DNA of 63,442 nucleotides, the filler included, from Lenisia limosa (taxonomy: Eukaryota > Protista > Breviatea): assembly GCA_001655205.1 (NCBI GenBank). It is 17 parts of 17 records of this genome, joined end to end, with 100 filler letters (N's around TTAATTAATTAA, not from the genome) between each part and the next. Parts side by side here need not be neighbours in the genome. Positions count along the whole stretch, not along the records: positions 1 to 3,921 come from LPNZ01006308.1; 16 more parts are not named here. One strand, 5' to 3'. The position numbers and the translations under genes are program-made. Below the pieces are notes generated by a model. The model saw nothing but the letters and a program-made list of their open reading frames with translations. It was not told the origin of the DNA and searched no databases. The first letter of the stretch is position 1. Every line of letters begins with the position of its first letter. Of this stretch, positions 1-7,474 are shown one piece after another.

Positions 1-50
1 CCAAGTAAGACAGGAACAACGCTAAAAGTCTTATTATCGGGGGCAGTGGG

Positions 51-3000
51 TTAGAGAATTGAAGATCTCTTCTAGCAAAGCCAGCAAAGCCAAAAAAGCC
101 AATGTCAGCAAAGCCAAAGCCAGCAAAGCCAGCAATGCCAACAAAGCCAGCCAGCAAGCCAAAGCCAGCAAAGCCAAAGCCAGCTAAGCCAAAGCCAGCA
201 AAGCCCACCTTAGTATCAGGAGTCTCAGTTTTGTCCATGGGCCTCTTTTTGGTGTCACGGGGCTTGCTGGTTTCCTTACTCTTGTCAGTGTCAACAGTTG
301 GGGGCTCGAGGGTCTGAACGAGTTAGCAAATTGGCGATGTGGGGATCTATTCGTAAATGATGCATCCCTATTCCGGCCAATCCCTTACAGCCATCCATGG
401 GTATGTAAACGAATGAAAAACACAAGATACAAAGCCGTCTATACCATCATCCAATCAGATTATGTTATGATACATAAGCACAGGAGTGCTTACCTCTTCC
501 TCTTCTTCCTCCTCTTCTCCTTCCTTCTTTGGCAGCTTGCAGAGCATCTAGGATGTCATTCAACTAGAGAGCAAAATCATTTTGGGCACGGAAAATTATA
601 AAAGAAAAAAGAAACACAAACAAGATGTCAACCCCACCTTGAACTGGCCAGACTTGACCCTAGGAAGATCCTCAACAGCAGGCGAGGAGAGGGGTTGAAC
701 CTCCACCACGCGGCCGGGCCGAGTGATCTTCAGGATTTGTGATGCGGCCAGGGCCTGGGGGAGTGAAACGAAGGGTATGATAAGAGCAAAGATAAATTTC
801 ACATTACTTCAACCCCCCCCCCCCANNNNNNNNNNNNNNNNNNNNNNNNNNNNNNNNNNNNNNNNNNNNNNNNNNNNNNNNNNNNNNNNNNNNNNNNNNN
901 NNNTGTCCATGCGGTCGTCAATGTTCTGCAGAATGTGCGGCTTCGATTTGAGGGCGGGATGCTCGGCAACAAAGTACGAACAGCAGTCACCTGGGAGGGG
1001 GGGGGGGGAGTAAAATTGGAAAATTTATGATACAAAAAGAGCCCAAATCAACTCTGACAACACACGAGGAAATCCTGATAAATAATGGCGTGGGGGAGGG
1101 GTACACTTCAAGGGTAAATGTAACTGTTCTTTCTTTGGGTGCATTATTATGGTAATACCAGATGGGACATTTTACTATGAATCCAACTAAAATTATGTTA
1201 GCCGCCATACCATAGGGCAGACACGACAACTCGAAGGTTCCAATATCACGAGCAATGTCCGTGATCTCTTCCTTGTTCATTCCTAAAGGGTCAGGCTCAG
1301 GAAGGAGTCAACAAGGGGCTGTGATGGTGTCCTTTTGTGTTCTTTTGTACCCTGGGATTTAGTTTATTGTATTTATTTTTTTGTTTGATAAAATGCCCAA
1401 TGATACATTTTTGAAGTCGATACGGTCTATCTCGGAAATATGACTCACCGATGAGGGGCGTGAGGATGTGCTTGGGGGAGTTGTGGTACACTGATTCAAG
1501 GTTGGTGATAGTTTGGCTGGCCACCTGGGGGGGGGGGGGNNNNNNNNNNNNNNNNNNNNNNNNNNNNNNNNNNNNNNNNNNNNNNNNNNNNNNNNNNNNN
1601 NNNNNNNNNNNNNNNNNNNNNNNNNNNNNNNNNNNNAAGAAAATATGTTCGCTGCGGAGGGAAATAAGTCTGAGCTGATCCCTCCCTGCTGCATATTGCA
1701 AAAGCAAAATGAGATCTTTTGGAACACAGTGATGCTCCCCCCTCCCACTTGGTTCATAGCATCGCCAGTAACGAGGAAGGGCGCCCCGTACTTCTCAGCA
1801 ACCATAGACGCAATCTGGGGGGGGGGGGGNNNNNNNNNNNNNNNNNNNNNNNNNNNNNNNNNNNNNNNNNNNNNNNNNNNNNNNNNNNNNNNNNNNNNNN
1901 NNNNNNNNNNNNNNNNNNNNNNNNNNNNNNNNNNNNNNNNNNNNNNNNNNNNNNNNNNNNNNNNNNNNNNNNNTCATAATATGCAGAGATATAACAATAA
2001 TAAGGAACACTGAGCCAATTCAGACCAGATAGAAAATCCCCAGGCGGAAAAGAGAACAAAGCTGCTCCCGACCCACTCTCAACATGCATCTGCGGTAAAC
2101 GAGCATACGCAATTTTGGCGCCACGCGAACGATAAGTTCCTAAATTAAGTCAAATACAGCAATATCCTCGCAAGTGGATATGAGTGCGACCTCTGGAGCC
2201 GATAAAAGGCCAACCCCTTTTCATTGATCAATAACTAAAGATTCCCTCCATAGGACACAAAAAAAAACGGAATAATAATTCTAAGGCACCTTGCAATTAA
2301 ATGCCACAATTATTTTCATTGGCAATTATTTTTTTCTTAAAGCAATTAATTGCTAAATAATTGAAAATAATACATTTAATTAATTACAAGCTTTCATATA
2401 CAATCAAACTATATCATATGTTGCATATAATATGATGAAATAAATATCTGGTTTGAGAGTCGTTTTCGGACAGTTCAAATAATGAAACAAGAAGAAGTTT
2501 GGGCCTATCATGGTCATTATTAAGCATACGGCTAATTAGGTAATAAAAGCCCGCATTTCTCAAAATAAATTTCCTCCTTTTGTCCTCTCTCCCTCAACAC
2601 ACCTGTTGTAACTCCTCAAAGGGAACAACGTAGAGGATGGTCTCAACCTACACCATTAATCAGCTACAGGAAAGAGTATGATACTCTTTTTATGAGAATA
2701 TGACATATGACTGCATTATTTGTGTTTATTTTCTTAATTCTATTTTAATACAGCTTATTTTTGGCCAATCTCAATTTCAAGCTGGAGGCTATTCCCAGAC
2801 TATCAAAACCCAAAAAAGGAAGAAAAGGTGGCCGCAAAGAGAGCGCCCACCTGGTAAATGGAGAGTTGCTCAGCAATCTGTTGGATCTTATCGCGAACTG
2901 CGGCAGAGGACTGCTGGGTAAAATACGGGAGGATGTGGGCTGATAAAATAAAACAAGCATGACATGAATATAACTATGTTAATATCAACACCTATATGGC

Positions 3001-3921
3001 TTGACATTGTGAACATTCCTGTTTATTTTGGGGGGTATATATTGAAAACTCAGTTTTCTACATTCAAAAACAAGACTGTACCTGTGAAGCGTTCTGGAAG
3101 TGGACACAGATAGTACGTGCGCCTCTCTTCATCATCAAATACGACGCAACTGGGCTGTCCATTCCACTACAACGTCAAAACAATGAATGATATGAATGAT
3201 AAACCGAATAATCTGAAAAACAAACAGTATCGTAAAACACAAAGCAACATCTAAAGGCTTCGAACAGGACACGGCAAGAAATTCAGCAATTAGGCCAAAG
3301 ANNNNNNNNNNNNNNNNNNNNNNNNNNNNNNNNNNNNNNNNNNNNNNNNNNNNNNNNNNNNNNNNNNNNNNNNNNNNNNNNNNNNNNNNNNNNNNNNNNN
3401 NNNNNNNNNNNNAAGAAGTAAACGTGTCTATATTCCATTGTGAAATTTTGTCATAAAGTTGCGTAATAAATTTCTACTTCAAATTATCCATTTAAGTCAC
3501 AAATTTGAAAGTAACGGAAATGACTTCAAAGCCAGCCGTCGAAATTTATTCACAAAAGTGGGAGAATATCAATTTATATTCTACAATATCAATATCCAAG
3601 AACATTGCGCCTACAAGCGTAGTCCTTGGAGACGAAAACCTGGAAGTTGGCCTTATCAGCATTGGTCTTGACATGACAGGAAGGCCACAGCTTCTCCTGG
3701 GGGGTGATAAGGTTACATGGAGGGGGCTTGCGTTCTTAAAATTGATGGTAAAATCTTTCAGAAGTCCAAAAACACCCCCCCCCCCACAATAAGCGCGACG
3801 AGAGGATCGCGGATTGGGGTGACCTCACTAATGGTGATGCGGTTGTAGAGCTTGATCTTGACATCGAGGTTCTCAGGCGCGGTGGCGTATTTGTTCTTCA
3901 GGAGGGACTCGGAATGTGACA
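51..3921 (-). CDS. thiI: tRNA 4-thiouridine(8) synthase ThiI (THUMP + PP-loop), multi-exon, 5' truncated
   Basis: Spliced exons read GMDSPVASYLMMKRGARTICVHF (PP-loop, exon 3082-3166), [133 protein letters not shown]. These follow the ThiI motif order. At least a dozen GT-AG introns. Probable stop TAA at 53-51. Confidence 0.93.
73..206. repeat. Degenerate GCAAAGCCA tandem repeat in last ThiI intron
   Basis: More than ten imperfect gcaaagcca/aaagcca units between a GT donor near 207 and an AG acceptor at 73-72 on the minus strand. Confidence 0.8.
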
Positions 3922-7000: not shown

Positions 7001-7474
7001 GGTAGGCTGGATGGAGTGGTTATGGGTTGTTACACTCTTCGTTCTCTTTTTTTTAACCCAATCACCTCTTACGTTAACACCCATCGAAATTCCCTGAGTT
7101 TTGGTGATGCTTGCAACGTTGTTTTTGCTTCTTTTTTTTAACTTTTCCAAATTACTCCCCCTCCAATAATGATTACTCCAGGGTGCTGTGGTTGGTGTGG
7201 GCCTCGTGACCGACAAGAACGCCTTGAAAATGGATCTTTTGATCAAGATCGGCGCTGGCTGGGTCATTACCATCCCCGCTGGTAAGGGGGCATGTTGTTT
7301 CATACATTGTCATTTTCCATCCCAGCACACATTCGACATTGTCAGCCAAACAGAGTTGATTTTGGGTCTTAAAATTTCCAATTTTACCCCCCCCCCCCAG
7401 GAGCGATCGGATCCATCCTGTGCTTCTATCTGACTAAGGGCGCTGTCCTCGACCACCAGGACTGCTCTAAGTAA
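4022..7474 (+). CDS. PiT/PHO4 (SLC20) family inorganic phosphate or oxyanion transporter, 5' truncated
   Basis: Exons encode WATIKALPVSTTHSIVAGIFGFG..IVASWVVSPVVG, FSHGANNVSNGVGPL, YKVMETIGTRIVKVTYTRGY, VAQVATSFVVLLCTYFGLPVSSTHVVL, GAVVGVGL..IGAGWVITIPAG. Stop TAA at 7472-7474. Confidence 0.93.

Follow-up and report, generated by a model that had tools for sequence, protein, structure and literature searches.

An intron-rich nuclear gene of the breviate Lenisia limosa encodes a predicted fusion of an archaeal-type ThiI and a cysteine desulfurase

4-Thiouridine at tRNA position 8 (s4U8) counts as a tRNA modification of bacteria and archaea, serving as a near-UV sensor and as a signal of tRNA stability. 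According to reviews, s4U has not been found in eukaryotes (PMC7694415), and homologues of ThiI, the tRNA uracil-4-sulfurtransferase, have already been stated to occur in some of them, with reference to Kotera 2010 (PMC9825150, PMC7694415). What, then, is a ThiI-like gene doing in the genome of the breviate Lenisia limosa? The window that we analysed is a stretch of 63,442 nucleotides, filler included, and the gene in question occupies its first piece, positions 1–3921. An initial annotation had read this piece as a prokaryote-type ThiI split by at least a dozen GT-AG introns and acquired by an old lateral transfer. We consider it probable that the piece covers the central part of a transcribed nuclear fusion gene with many introns, whose ThiI–desulfurase product makes s4U8 and belongs to an archaeal-type clade of old prokaryotic acquisition.

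Exon open reading frames (ORFs) and L088, a contig of 9.7 kb that covers this locus without gaps, place the gene on the minus strand and the piece in its mid-part. All five assembled blocks are 100% identical to L088, the two independent assemblies being in accord. The piece contains 13 exons in assembled letters and one more in the gap at 3302–3412 (Table 1). L088 supplies the true lengths of all four gaps, and the DNA run X2 separately gives the same length for the three others, in the case of 826–903 through a bridging contig; these three are intronic or lie at an intron edge, and the reading frame is intact through all four. Exon 3, missing from the assembled letters, turns up in RNA as well, where it forms the loose end of a contig behind 3167. 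Each of the 14 introns touching the piece is GT-AG and the gene model has no in-frame stop, in agreement with the dozen or more introns annotated before. On L088, the whole model comprises 27 exons with 26 of 26 introns of GT-AG type, a terminal stop codon, and a coding sequence of 2.4 kb that is free of internal stops and frameshifts. L088 ends before the 5′ end of the gene, and the 795 residues encoded are a lower bound. Exon 1, which starts 33 nt outside the piece (L088 position 55), aligns with residues 264–305 of P0001, the orthologue of Pygsuia biforma.

Table 1. Gene features and ThiI family matches along the piece (positions count along the window)
Feature	Positions	Strand	Remarks
Exon 1 (part)	3788..3921	-	THUMP-region residues ..SHSESLLKNKYATAPENLDVKIKLYNR..PLVALI; donor GTGGGGGG
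Exon 2	3615..3696	-	EKLWPSCHVKTNADKANFQVFVSKDYA; acceptor C-run plus AG, donor GTAGGC
Assembly gap hiding exon 3	3302..3412		true length 97 nt; exon of 79 nt, L088 600–678; encodes ..VKGVGGLPTSDSTTVVSLLSG, first half of PP-loop motif
PF02568 match	3174..3067	-	profile 12–40, E 7.7e-9
Exon 4	3082..3166	-	(G)GMDSPVASYLMMKRGARTICVHFQNASQ, PP-loop ATP-pyrophosphatase motif; Pfam ThiI E 7.7e-9; PDB 2C5S (ThiI); RNA joint 3082/2910
Exon 5	2851..2910	-	RNA joint with exon 4; gene model
Exon 6	2603..2647	-	15 residues; gene model
Exon 7	2077..2139	-	gene model
Assembly gap	1830..1973		true length 48 nt; within intron 2076–1815
PF02568 match	1829..1638	-	profile 98–133
Exon 8	1749..1814	-	22 residues; Pfam ThiI profile 98–133
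Assembly gap	1540..1636		true length 47 nt; within intron 1748–1525
PF02568 match	1539..1300	-	profile 120–147
Exon 9	1449..1524	-	26 residues; completes GxxxxQVASQT motif; Pfam ThiI profile 120–147; RNA joint 1449/1282
PF02568 match	1307..990	-	profile 145–171
Exon 10	1211..1282	-	23 residues; Pfam ThiI profile 145–171; RNA joints at both ends
Intron 1210–991, 3′ end	991..1056	-	high-copy module ..CATAAATTTTCCAATTTTAC, C-run and AG; 'family A' of the initial annotation
PF02568 match	1024..905	-	profile 168–194
Exon 11 (87 of 113 nt)	904..990	-	catalytic cysteine motif; Pfam ThiI profile 168–194; RNA joint 1211/990; other 26 nt in gap 826–903
Assembly gap	826..903		true length 27 nt; end of exon 11 (..SVVSDLEVN), in frame, and G of GT donor
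Exon 12	638..754	-	ALAASQILKITRPG..DLPRVKSGQFK; end of ThiI core, start of linker; aligned with Pygsuia and Nonionella
Exon 13	494..547	-	MLCKLPKKEGEEEEEEEE, acidic linker; resembles Pygsuia linker QLCKIPPKENEE
Exon 14	209..313	-	TLEPP..KKRPMDKTETPDTK, basic linker; donor GTGGGC
Intron 14/15, 5′ part	1..208	-	9/15-nt tandem repeat (AGCAAAGCC)n at 74–205

Removal of introns is directly visible in RNA. Contigs of the polyA run X1 join 3082 to 2910, 1449 to 1282 and 1211 to 990 exactly at GT-AG sites, so that the splicing proposed by the initial annotation is borne out for 3 of the 26 introns; the desulfurase exons were placed by homology and splice-site logic. Its claim of a host repeat inside an intron also proved real: at about 994–1056, the 3′ end of intron 1210–991, word depth in X2 rises to ~86,000 as compared to ~21 in the flanks, a roughly 4000-fold excess. 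L088 has thirteen related copies of this 3′ module, each at the 3′ end of an intron. Most introns of the gene have in common a GTGGG... start, an end formed by a C-run and AG, and the high-copy 3′ module, giving them an introner-like appearance, and the family may be of value for the study of intron spread.

Turning to the encoded protein, five exon ORFs match Pfam ThiI (PF02568) in collinear order, and the only other family found on exon ORFs was tRNA_Me_trans at E 0.03. Exon searches gave no matches to the Ctu1/Ncs6/TtcA/TtuA families. The orthologue P0001 scores 228.7 bits with Pfam ThiI as compared to 27.5 with QueC, and its ThiI half reaches 298.8 bits with NCBIfam TIGR00342 (cutoff 264.5), TtuA and MnmA scoring 19. 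TIGR00342, an equivalog-domain model for tRNA uracil 4-sulfurtransferase, covers P0001 at profile positions 1–365 and accordingly includes the RNA-binding part. The Pfam THUMP model matches neither the exons nor P0001, whereas TIGR00342 does span the region in P0001. Exons 1–3 align with the THUMP part of a close-ThiI profile (positions 102–165 of an HMM built on A2, an alignment of 12 sequences of the closest prokaryotic ThiI) and with the THUMP regions of Pygsuia and Bacillus. The Pygsuia orthologue carries an N-terminal ferredoxin-like domain (PF22025, E 8e-9), the corresponding part of our gene lying upstream of both the piece and L088. The SGGxDS signature occurs as LLSGGMDSPVA across the exon 3/4 junction, in L088 and in a spliced RNA contig. 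Both the QVASQT motif and the catalytic cysteine motif PYGDCCSYF, the equivalent of E. coli Cys344, are present at positions invariant in A2, and wherever the gene covers them all residues invariant in this alignment are kept. A GLPV at 3686–3675, considered as a GGLPVG motif, turned out to be a chance match; the real motif, GVGGLPT, is encoded by the exon within the gap at 3302–3412. Pfam finds no rhodanese domain in the gene model, which runs from ThiI core through linker to Aminotran_5, and the translated ThiI half has no CXXC, its cysteines occurring only in TICVHF, RRCMLR, LSCLPY and GDCC. A search of the ESM Atlas returned generic prokaryotic ThiI clusters and nothing else. The N-terminal half is predicted to be a ThiI tRNA uracil-4-sulfurtransferase with a THUMP region and a PP-loop ATP-pyrophosphatase domain. 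The PF02568 exon matches and the archaeal ThiI tree described below uphold the earlier identification as a genuine prokaryote-type ThiI rather than a Ctu1/Ncs6/TtcA protein or a THUMPD methyltransferase; the 'full ThiI motif series' was slightly overstated.

What the ThiI reading had missed is that the gene does not end with this enzyme. On L088, a complete cysteine desulfurase of NifS/IscS type follows beyond position 1, giving 27 exons and at least 795 residues. The two halves are separated by about 85 residues of linker, partly acidic and partly basic. Exon 15 (..KTAYLDNAATT..), which starts the desulfurase, lies 47 nt past position 1 at L088 3845, all desulfurase features being located outside the piece on L088. 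Exons 19–22 match Pfam Aminotran_5 (PF00266) collinearly at profile positions 115–156, 158–185, 192–227 and 246–268 (best E 9e-7). The PLP lysine is found in SHKVHGP at model residue 618 and the catalytic cysteine loop as GSACAS at residue 742. The C-terminal half of P0001 scores 314.4 with NF002806, a model of the IscS subfamily, and so exceeds its cutoff of 304. We predict from these motifs and matches a class-V cysteine desulfurase (NifS/IscS-type, group I). Intact catalytic motifs in both halves give no sign of the repurposed sulfurtransferase that the initial annotation had entertained. Regarding the linker, the frame chosen for exon 13 is the only one running on into the next exon; another frame (LNDILDALQAAKEGRRRGG.., stop at ~290) was rejected, the chosen one fitting the Pygsuia linker and reaching the desulfurase. 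Likewise, reading 1–208 as coding (GFAGFG.. repeats, ORF product P0251) was rejected as artefactual. We prefer an intron here, placed by splice sites and linker length, because of the gene-typical GTGGGC donor, the C-run-AG acceptor and the Pygsuia-like length of the linker after its removal.

The gene is no isolated case. Pygsuia biforma and Nonionella stella have orthologues of the same architecture, as kinetoplastids probably do; found in a few other protists, the gene is not unique. Its closest relative is the fusion of the breviate Pygsuia (EukProt EP00033_P000651, 1028 aa), with 48.5% identity over 785 columns (P0001 residues 252–1021), followed by that of the foraminifer Nonionella (EP01083_P075211, P0011, 1030 aa) with 40.9% over 721 columns. 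A kinetoplastid candidate from Leptomonas seymouri (KPI89524.1) is annotated as 'thiamine biosynthesis-like protein', and kinetoplastid ThiI may fall in the same clade, which is made up of ThiI-then-desulfurase fusions from Pygsuia, Nonionella, environmental sequences and possibly kinetoplastids. The ThiI half is 40–47% identical to archaeal and bacterial proteins. In an IQ-TREE analysis, unrooted in the relevant sense and without specific sampling of Asgard archaeal ThiI, the gene groups with Pygsuia (support 100/99) inside a 6-row clade including eukaryotes (100/99); this eukaryote-containing clade is sister to a DPANN-dominated group (98/94), and both lie within a mainly archaeal clade of 42 rows (98/99). 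Rhodelphis marinus, Diplonema ambulator and Entosiphon sulcatum carry fusions of reverse order, with the desulfurase first. AU tests did not reject monophyly of the breviate/foraminiferal and kinetoplastid sequences (p-AU 0.30), whereas a single clade of all eukaryotic fusions was rejected (p-AU 0.0005); judged by these sequences, the reverse-order fusions arose separately, and such separately derived fusions point to repeated gain of such genes in eukaryotes. Among the nearest prokaryotic loci, a desulfurase stands beside thiI only in Nealsonbacteria, Magasanikbacteria, one gammaproteobacterial MAG and Bacillus; none lies within 3 kb of the tree-nearest DPANN thiI loci. Exact sequence look-ups matched neither P0001 nor two ORFs of the piece, and scanning JGI metagenomes for exact 30-mers gave no match.

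The gene is prokaryote-type, truly eukaryotic and old. Most likely, it is an old acquisition from a prokaryote that later gained many host-type introns, direction and timing of this transfer being inferred. As for function, enzymatic activity, tRNA substrate and cell compartment are inferred too, and the protein would probably carry out self-sufficient s4U8 synthesis after the model of Bacillus NifZ–ThiI. In this scheme, the desulfurase half would draw sulfur from cysteine as a persulfide and pass it on to the ThiI cysteine within one polypeptide, while the THUMP region would hold the tRNA and the PP-loop domain would adenylate U8, allowing sulfur to replace the 4-oxygen and to yield s4U8. Being fused to its own sulfur donor, such a ThiI would be independent of the host sulfur-relay network.

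Several other readings have to be weighed against this one. The identity to prokaryotic proteins, the mixed-culture source and the metatranscriptomic label of the RNA library might suggest prokaryotic contamination or an assembly chimera posing as a eukaryotic gene. However, such an origin, which the initial annotation had also discounted, was already refuted by the spliced polyA contigs, and it deserves practically no weight in view of 26 frame-preserving GT-AG introns, an intron repeat whose depth in X2 is ~4000 times that of the flanks, the full identity of two independent assemblies and an even depth of ~21 across the coding regions. Spliceosomal introns, their removal in polyA RNA and the high-copy host repeat that they contain show the gene to be a nuclear eukaryotic one. 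Transcription that is correctly spliced likewise makes a decaying pseudogene from an old transfer very improbable, as do the 2.4 kb of coding sequence in 27 exons without a stop or frameshift and the catalytic motifs intact in both halves, even though the very low RNA coverage (word depth 2–6 in a small library) would fit decay. A functional enzyme might still relay sulfur to something other than U8, be it another RNA position, the thiamine thiazole or another thio-cofactor, which would make the name ThiI misleading. In line with this, reports of s4U in eukaryotes are absent (PMC7694415), the THUMP region has diverged beyond the reach of its Pfam model and the database name of the kinetoplastid member refers to thiamine. 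We nevertheless regard this as distinctly improbable: the rhodanese domain, which the thiamine role of ThiI requires (Martinez-Gomez 2011, according to the passage citing it in PMC9825150), is missing, so no role in thiamine synthesis is expected, P0001 passes the tRNA uracil 4-sulfurtransferase model with its RNA-binding part included, and the invariant residues of the closest prokaryotic ThiI are all kept where covered.

The strongest competitor concerns origin rather than function. An archaeal-type ThiI, possibly already fused, might have been inherited from the archaeal host by the last eukaryotic common ancestor (LECA) and lost in most lineages, which would suit a clade within archaeal ThiI that unites supergroups as distant as Breviatea (Obazoa), Foraminifera (Rhizaria) and possibly Kinetoplastea (Discoba), the unrejected monophyly with kinetoplastids and a fully 'domesticated' gene of 26 host-type introns. 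We hold this to be unlikely, if less so than the preceding alternatives, as the distribution is very patchy (2 of 60 eukaryotes have ThiI according to Kotera 2010, cited in PMC9825150), DPANN archaea and a few bacterial MAGs come nearest among prokaryotes with Asgard archaea absent from the best 80 genome matches, and the fusions of Rhodelphis, Diplonema and Entosiphon were derived separately. The patchy clade could also reflect eukaryote-to-eukaryote spread. The old lateral transfer proposed at the outset fits the tree and appears likely as compared to ancient inheritance with losses, but falls short of proof, since inheritance and spread between eukaryotes fit as well.

With old acquisition from a prokaryote as the preferred reading, the locus provides genomic proof that one eukaryotic ThiI homologue is a bona fide, intron-laden and expressed nuclear gene, and that its family is ThiI welded to its own sulfur donor. 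It also offers a clean case in which to study how genes move from archaea to eukaryotes and how domains become fused more than once. More tentatively, and with nearly balanced expectations, we suggest that breviates, foraminifera and perhaps kinetoplastids may carry tRNA s4U made by a single-chain, DPANN-like ThiI–desulfurase, and, independently of this, that the introns may represent an introner-like family that is active and is marked by its termini, GTGGG(G)n ... (C)nAG, and by a common 3′ module. If the former holds, entire protist lineages would contradict the view that s4U is missing from eukaryotes. The limited literature that we searched describes no eukaryotic ThiI–desulfurase fusion and no s4U in kinetoplastids or breviates, an absence that is not proof. 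The textbook claim is now directly testable in named organisms, namely Pygsuia, Leptomonas and other trypanosomatids, and the source protist itself.

How does the predicted enzyme compare to known systems? With E. coli ThiI, it would share PP-loop adenylation chemistry, the Cys344-equivalent cysteine and a putative THUMP-type RNA-binding region. The E. coli protein, in contrast, consists of THUMP, PP-loop and C-terminal rhodanese domains and relies on the shared housekeeping IscS as sulfur donor, whereas the breviate protein lacks the rhodanese and has its donor fused. In Methanococcus and Pyrococcus TtuI, a CXXC+C motif binds a [4Fe-4S] cluster (PMC9825150). Like TtuI, the Lenisia ThiI half shows archaeal affinity and lacks a rhodanese, but a desulfurase domain is present here in place of the CXXC pair, the absence of which makes an Fe–S mechanism unlikely. 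The fusions of Rhodelphis, Diplonema and Entosiphon also combine both domains in one eukaryotic protein; they differ in having the opposite domain order and ThiI halves near Bacillus-type sequences. The Pygsuia and Nonionella fusions agree with that of Lenisia in domain order, linker and motifs. They are transcriptome predictions, whereas genomic introns and host repeats are seen in Lenisia; both also have an N-terminal part absent from L088, in Pygsuia of ~250 residues with an additional stretch ahead of the ferredoxin-like domain. The closest functional model is the documented Bacillus NifZ–ThiI pairing (PMC7694415, PMC13066941), visible as adjacent nifZ and thiI genes in B. mycoides. Both systems have, by prediction in our case, the two activities, a ThiI devoid of rhodanese and CXXC+C with the conserved cysteine in DCC, and a NifS/IscS-type desulfurase with the SHK lysine and the GSAC cysteine loop. 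Whereas Bacillus employs two adjacent genes, Lenisia joins both parts through a linker of ~85 residues in a single polypeptide, encoded by a nuclear gene with 26 introns and an archaeal-type ThiI half that is distant from Bacillus in the tree.

The ThiI gene is encoded on the minus strand. Ten stop-free translated pieces of this strand were scanned against Pfam, and five of them matched ThiI (PF02568) in collinear order, from 3174..3067 (profile 12-40, E 7.7e-9) to 1024..905 (profile 168-194). The sole other family on these pieces was the related tRNA_Me_trans HUP domain (E 0.03). The exon harboring the PP-loop also matched the solved structure of Bacillus anthracis ThiI (2C5S), and a search of the ThiI piece for tRNA genes found none. 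We set exon borders at canonical AG/GT sites using two bacterial ThiI proteins as guides, and a single reading frame was kept across all placed borders. A linker about 85 residues long, first acidic and then basic, follows the PP-loop domain. The sequence is contained in two runs of one study, a polyA 'metatranscriptomic' RNA library (X1) and a DNA library (X2). Two X1 RNA contigs were spliced, and each stretch skipped in them reads CT..AC on the plus strand, that is GT..AG on the minus strand. RNA contig 2 extends upstream with letters encoding ..STTVVSLLSG that do not occur in the assembled window; an exon is therefore missing from the assembly.

Searching with the window's terminal ORF returned its own database entry, P0251, which led to L088, a contig of 9,721 nt without gaps (ENA assembly ERZ3820729, NODE_1754). 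All five assembled window blocks match L088 at 100% identity. Three gaps are spanned by X2 contigs, with 27, 47 and 48 letters instead of 78, 97 and 144 N, while the fourth measures 97 nt by L088 and contains the missing exon, 79 nt long and encoding ..VKGVGGLPTSDSTTVVSLLSG. The N count exceeds the true length in all four. At each gap, intron ends made of G or C homopolymers adjoin the missing letters and are the likely cause of the assembly break.

The gene model on L088 comprises 27 exons and 26 introns, all GT-AG, has no internal stops and ends at a stop codon at 7307-7309; its 5' end is missing because L088 breaks off in the intron upstream of exon 1. The part of the gene past window position 1 reveals that the ThiI protein is fused to a cysteine desulfurase, which goes beyond what the initial annotation could know. 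The desulfurase half begins with AYLDNAATT and carries SHKVHGP, with the PLP lysine, and STGSACAS, with the catalytic cysteine; Pfam Aminotran_5 matches four of its exons, again collinearly. The product of the gene model has no rhodanese domain, and its ThiI half lacks the CXXC+C motif that marks the Fe-S class of ThiI (PMC9825150). A tandem repeat at window 74-205, (AGCAAAGCC)n with periods of 9 and 15 nt, can be read without stops in several frames of either strand, giving KPKPAKP.. on plus and GFAGFG.. on minus. It falls within an intron of the gene model and gives rise to a spurious ORF product in the protein database, P0251 (180 aa, from linker exon 14 to the first desulfurase exon).

Exons, assembly gaps, spliced RNA joins and homopolymer intron ends of the ThiI-desulfurase gene (window positions unless stated)
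Feature	Position	Strand	Content or source
Exons 1-14	within window	minus	second half of THUMP region, whole PP-loop domain, linker
Exons 15-27	past window position 1	minus	complete class-V cysteine desulfurase
Gap, true 27 nt	826-903		final 26 nt of exon 11 plus the donor, in frame
Gap, true 47 nt	1540-1636		intronic
Gap, true 48 nt	1830-1973		intronic
Gap, true 97 nt	3302-3412		conceals exon 3
RNA contig 1 joins	1483-1448, 1281-1209, 988-937	minus	X1
RNA contig 2 joins	3167-3082, 2910-2871	minus	X1
G-run/C-run intron ends	991-1056, 792-825, 1525-1539, 1815-1829, 3697-3708, 3776-3787; L088 throughout

Most introns of the gene resemble each other at their ends. Donors read GTGGG in 18 of the 26, often followed by a G-run of up to about 12, and 13 of the 26 acceptors have a C-run directly before the AG. 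A shared module some 40 nt long (..TTTTTGTTTCATAAATTTTCCAGTTTTAC, then C-run and AG; also written ..CATAAATTTTCCA[AG]TTTTAC, C-run, AG) is present at 13 intron 3' ends within the 9.7 kb of L088, and a second variant contributes 5-6 copies. The DNA run covers the copy at window 994-1056 at about 4000-fold excess depth, and this copy is found in RNA contigs too; the next intron begins with the same module, inverted, at its 5' end (window 792-823). Judged by these sequences, the introns sharing the module look like introner-type elements, a mobile intron family with ends that could pair together. More G-runs and C-run+AG motifs of this kind lie 3' of the gene's stop, at L088 7700-8240, and are probably introns of a neighbouring gene; the ORFs called there have no Pfam matches on record.

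As the initial annotation had claimed, a prokaryote-type ThiI resides in a eukaryotic genome. Spliced polyA RNA, 26 introns that preserve the frame and a host repeat within introns rule out contamination, against which the initial annotation had argued.

An exhaustive representative search with a 36-residue PP-loop ORF returned ten matches, headed by P0001, a fusion protein of 1028 aa from Pygsuia biforma (EukProt EP00033) with the domains ThiI_fer, ThiI and Aminotran_5. Its two halves exceed the NCBIfam cutoffs of TIGR00342 (ThiI) and NF002806 (IscS subfamily), and our gene model is 48.5% identical to its residues 252-1021, linker included. Further eukaryotic fusions were found using P0001 as query. 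The Nonionella stella protein (P0011) has the domain order of the Lenisia limosa gene; the P0001 search also returned Leptomonas seymouri KPI89524.1, annotated in the database as 'thiamine biosynthesis-like protein', and the desulfurase comes first in Rhodelphis marinus, Diplonema ambulator and Entosiphon sulcatum. An environmental relative, P0005, lies on a eukaryote-like Logan contig, where a ThiI ORF is followed by an Aminotran_5 ORF on the same strand. Protist ThiI homologues are already on record and orthologues occur in other supergroups, neither of which the initial annotation could know. The gene described here adds a new member, verified at the genome level, to an uncharacterised eukaryotic family of ThiI-cysteine desulfurase fusions. 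Two environmental contigs, L087 and L085, each encode a ThiI-desulfurase protein about 1650 aa long and free of introns (P0012 and P0013, respectively), and both branch within the breviate/foraminifer clade; the adjoining genes on these contigs have almost no Pfam matches.

The nearest stand-alone proteins show 40-47% identity and mostly carry the labels Woesearchaeota, Diapherotrites, Nanoarchaeota or Micrarchaeota, plus a few Verrucomicrobia. A scan of prokaryotes, with a single genome for each species, agreed with this and supplied organism names. In many Vicinamibacterales (Acidobacteriota) proteins, ThiI is combined with a class-II fructose-bisphosphate aldolase domain (PF01116/PF08013; among P0034-P0090, at loci such as L050, L056 and L068).

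We placed the gene with a FastTree of 324 rows and a careful IQ-TREE analysis (LG+C20+F+G4 PMSF, 72 rows, 383 columns), which omitted most of the 250 near-redundant stand-alone matches as well as flagged long-branched rows. In both trees, Lenisia limosa and Pygsuia are sisters (IQ-TREE support 100/99) and form one clade with P0005, Nonionella and P0012/P0013 (100/99). The sister of this clade is a 13-row group of DPANN archaea and three bacterial MAG sequences (98/94), and the two together are nested in a 42-row, mainly archaeal clade (98/99). Because this patchy eukaryotic clade sits inside archaeal ThiI, the simplest reading of the tree would be lateral acquisition from an archaeon, or via a bacterial intermediate, and a long residence since then. 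Under present sampling, ancient inheritance with loss, or spread from eukaryote to eukaryote, may also account for the pattern. The intron-split ThiI of the initial annotation is confirmed as an observation, and the interpretation given there is supported in part.

The kinetoplastid group has a very long stem and falls in a polytomy adjoining the breviate/foraminifer clade. Constraining it with the Lenisia limosa clade cost 2.6 log-likelihood units (p-AU 0.30); a single eukaryotic ThiI-then-desulfurase clade is therefore permitted, though not demonstrated. Fusions with the desulfurase first lie far from the Lenisia limosa clade in the tree, and a constraint uniting all fusion groups was rejected (p-AU 0.0005), which implies at least two fusion events. 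Across eukaryotes, both domain orders occur, with at least two separate origins (P0017, P0030 and P0047 versus P0001 and P0011). Within Euglenozoa, Leptomonas is ThiI-first and on the archaeal side, whereas Diplonema and Entosiphon are desulfurase-first and branch elsewhere.

The fusion to a desulfurase suggests a mechanism, by way of the Bacillus NifZ-ThiI system. In Bacillus, a ThiI without a rhodanese domain and a dedicated desulfurase, NifZ, suffice for s4U8 (PMC7694415, PMC13066941). The genes for NifZ and ThiI adjoin there. By analogy, the single-chain ThiI-desulfurase may work like this pair in making s4U8. The main import is that the question of whether any eukaryotes make s4U becomes a simple experiment. 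The ThiI-desulfurase fusion family represents a variation on the NifZ-ThiI system already known: the pair is the same as in Bacillus, but in the Lenisia limosa fusion it forms one chain.
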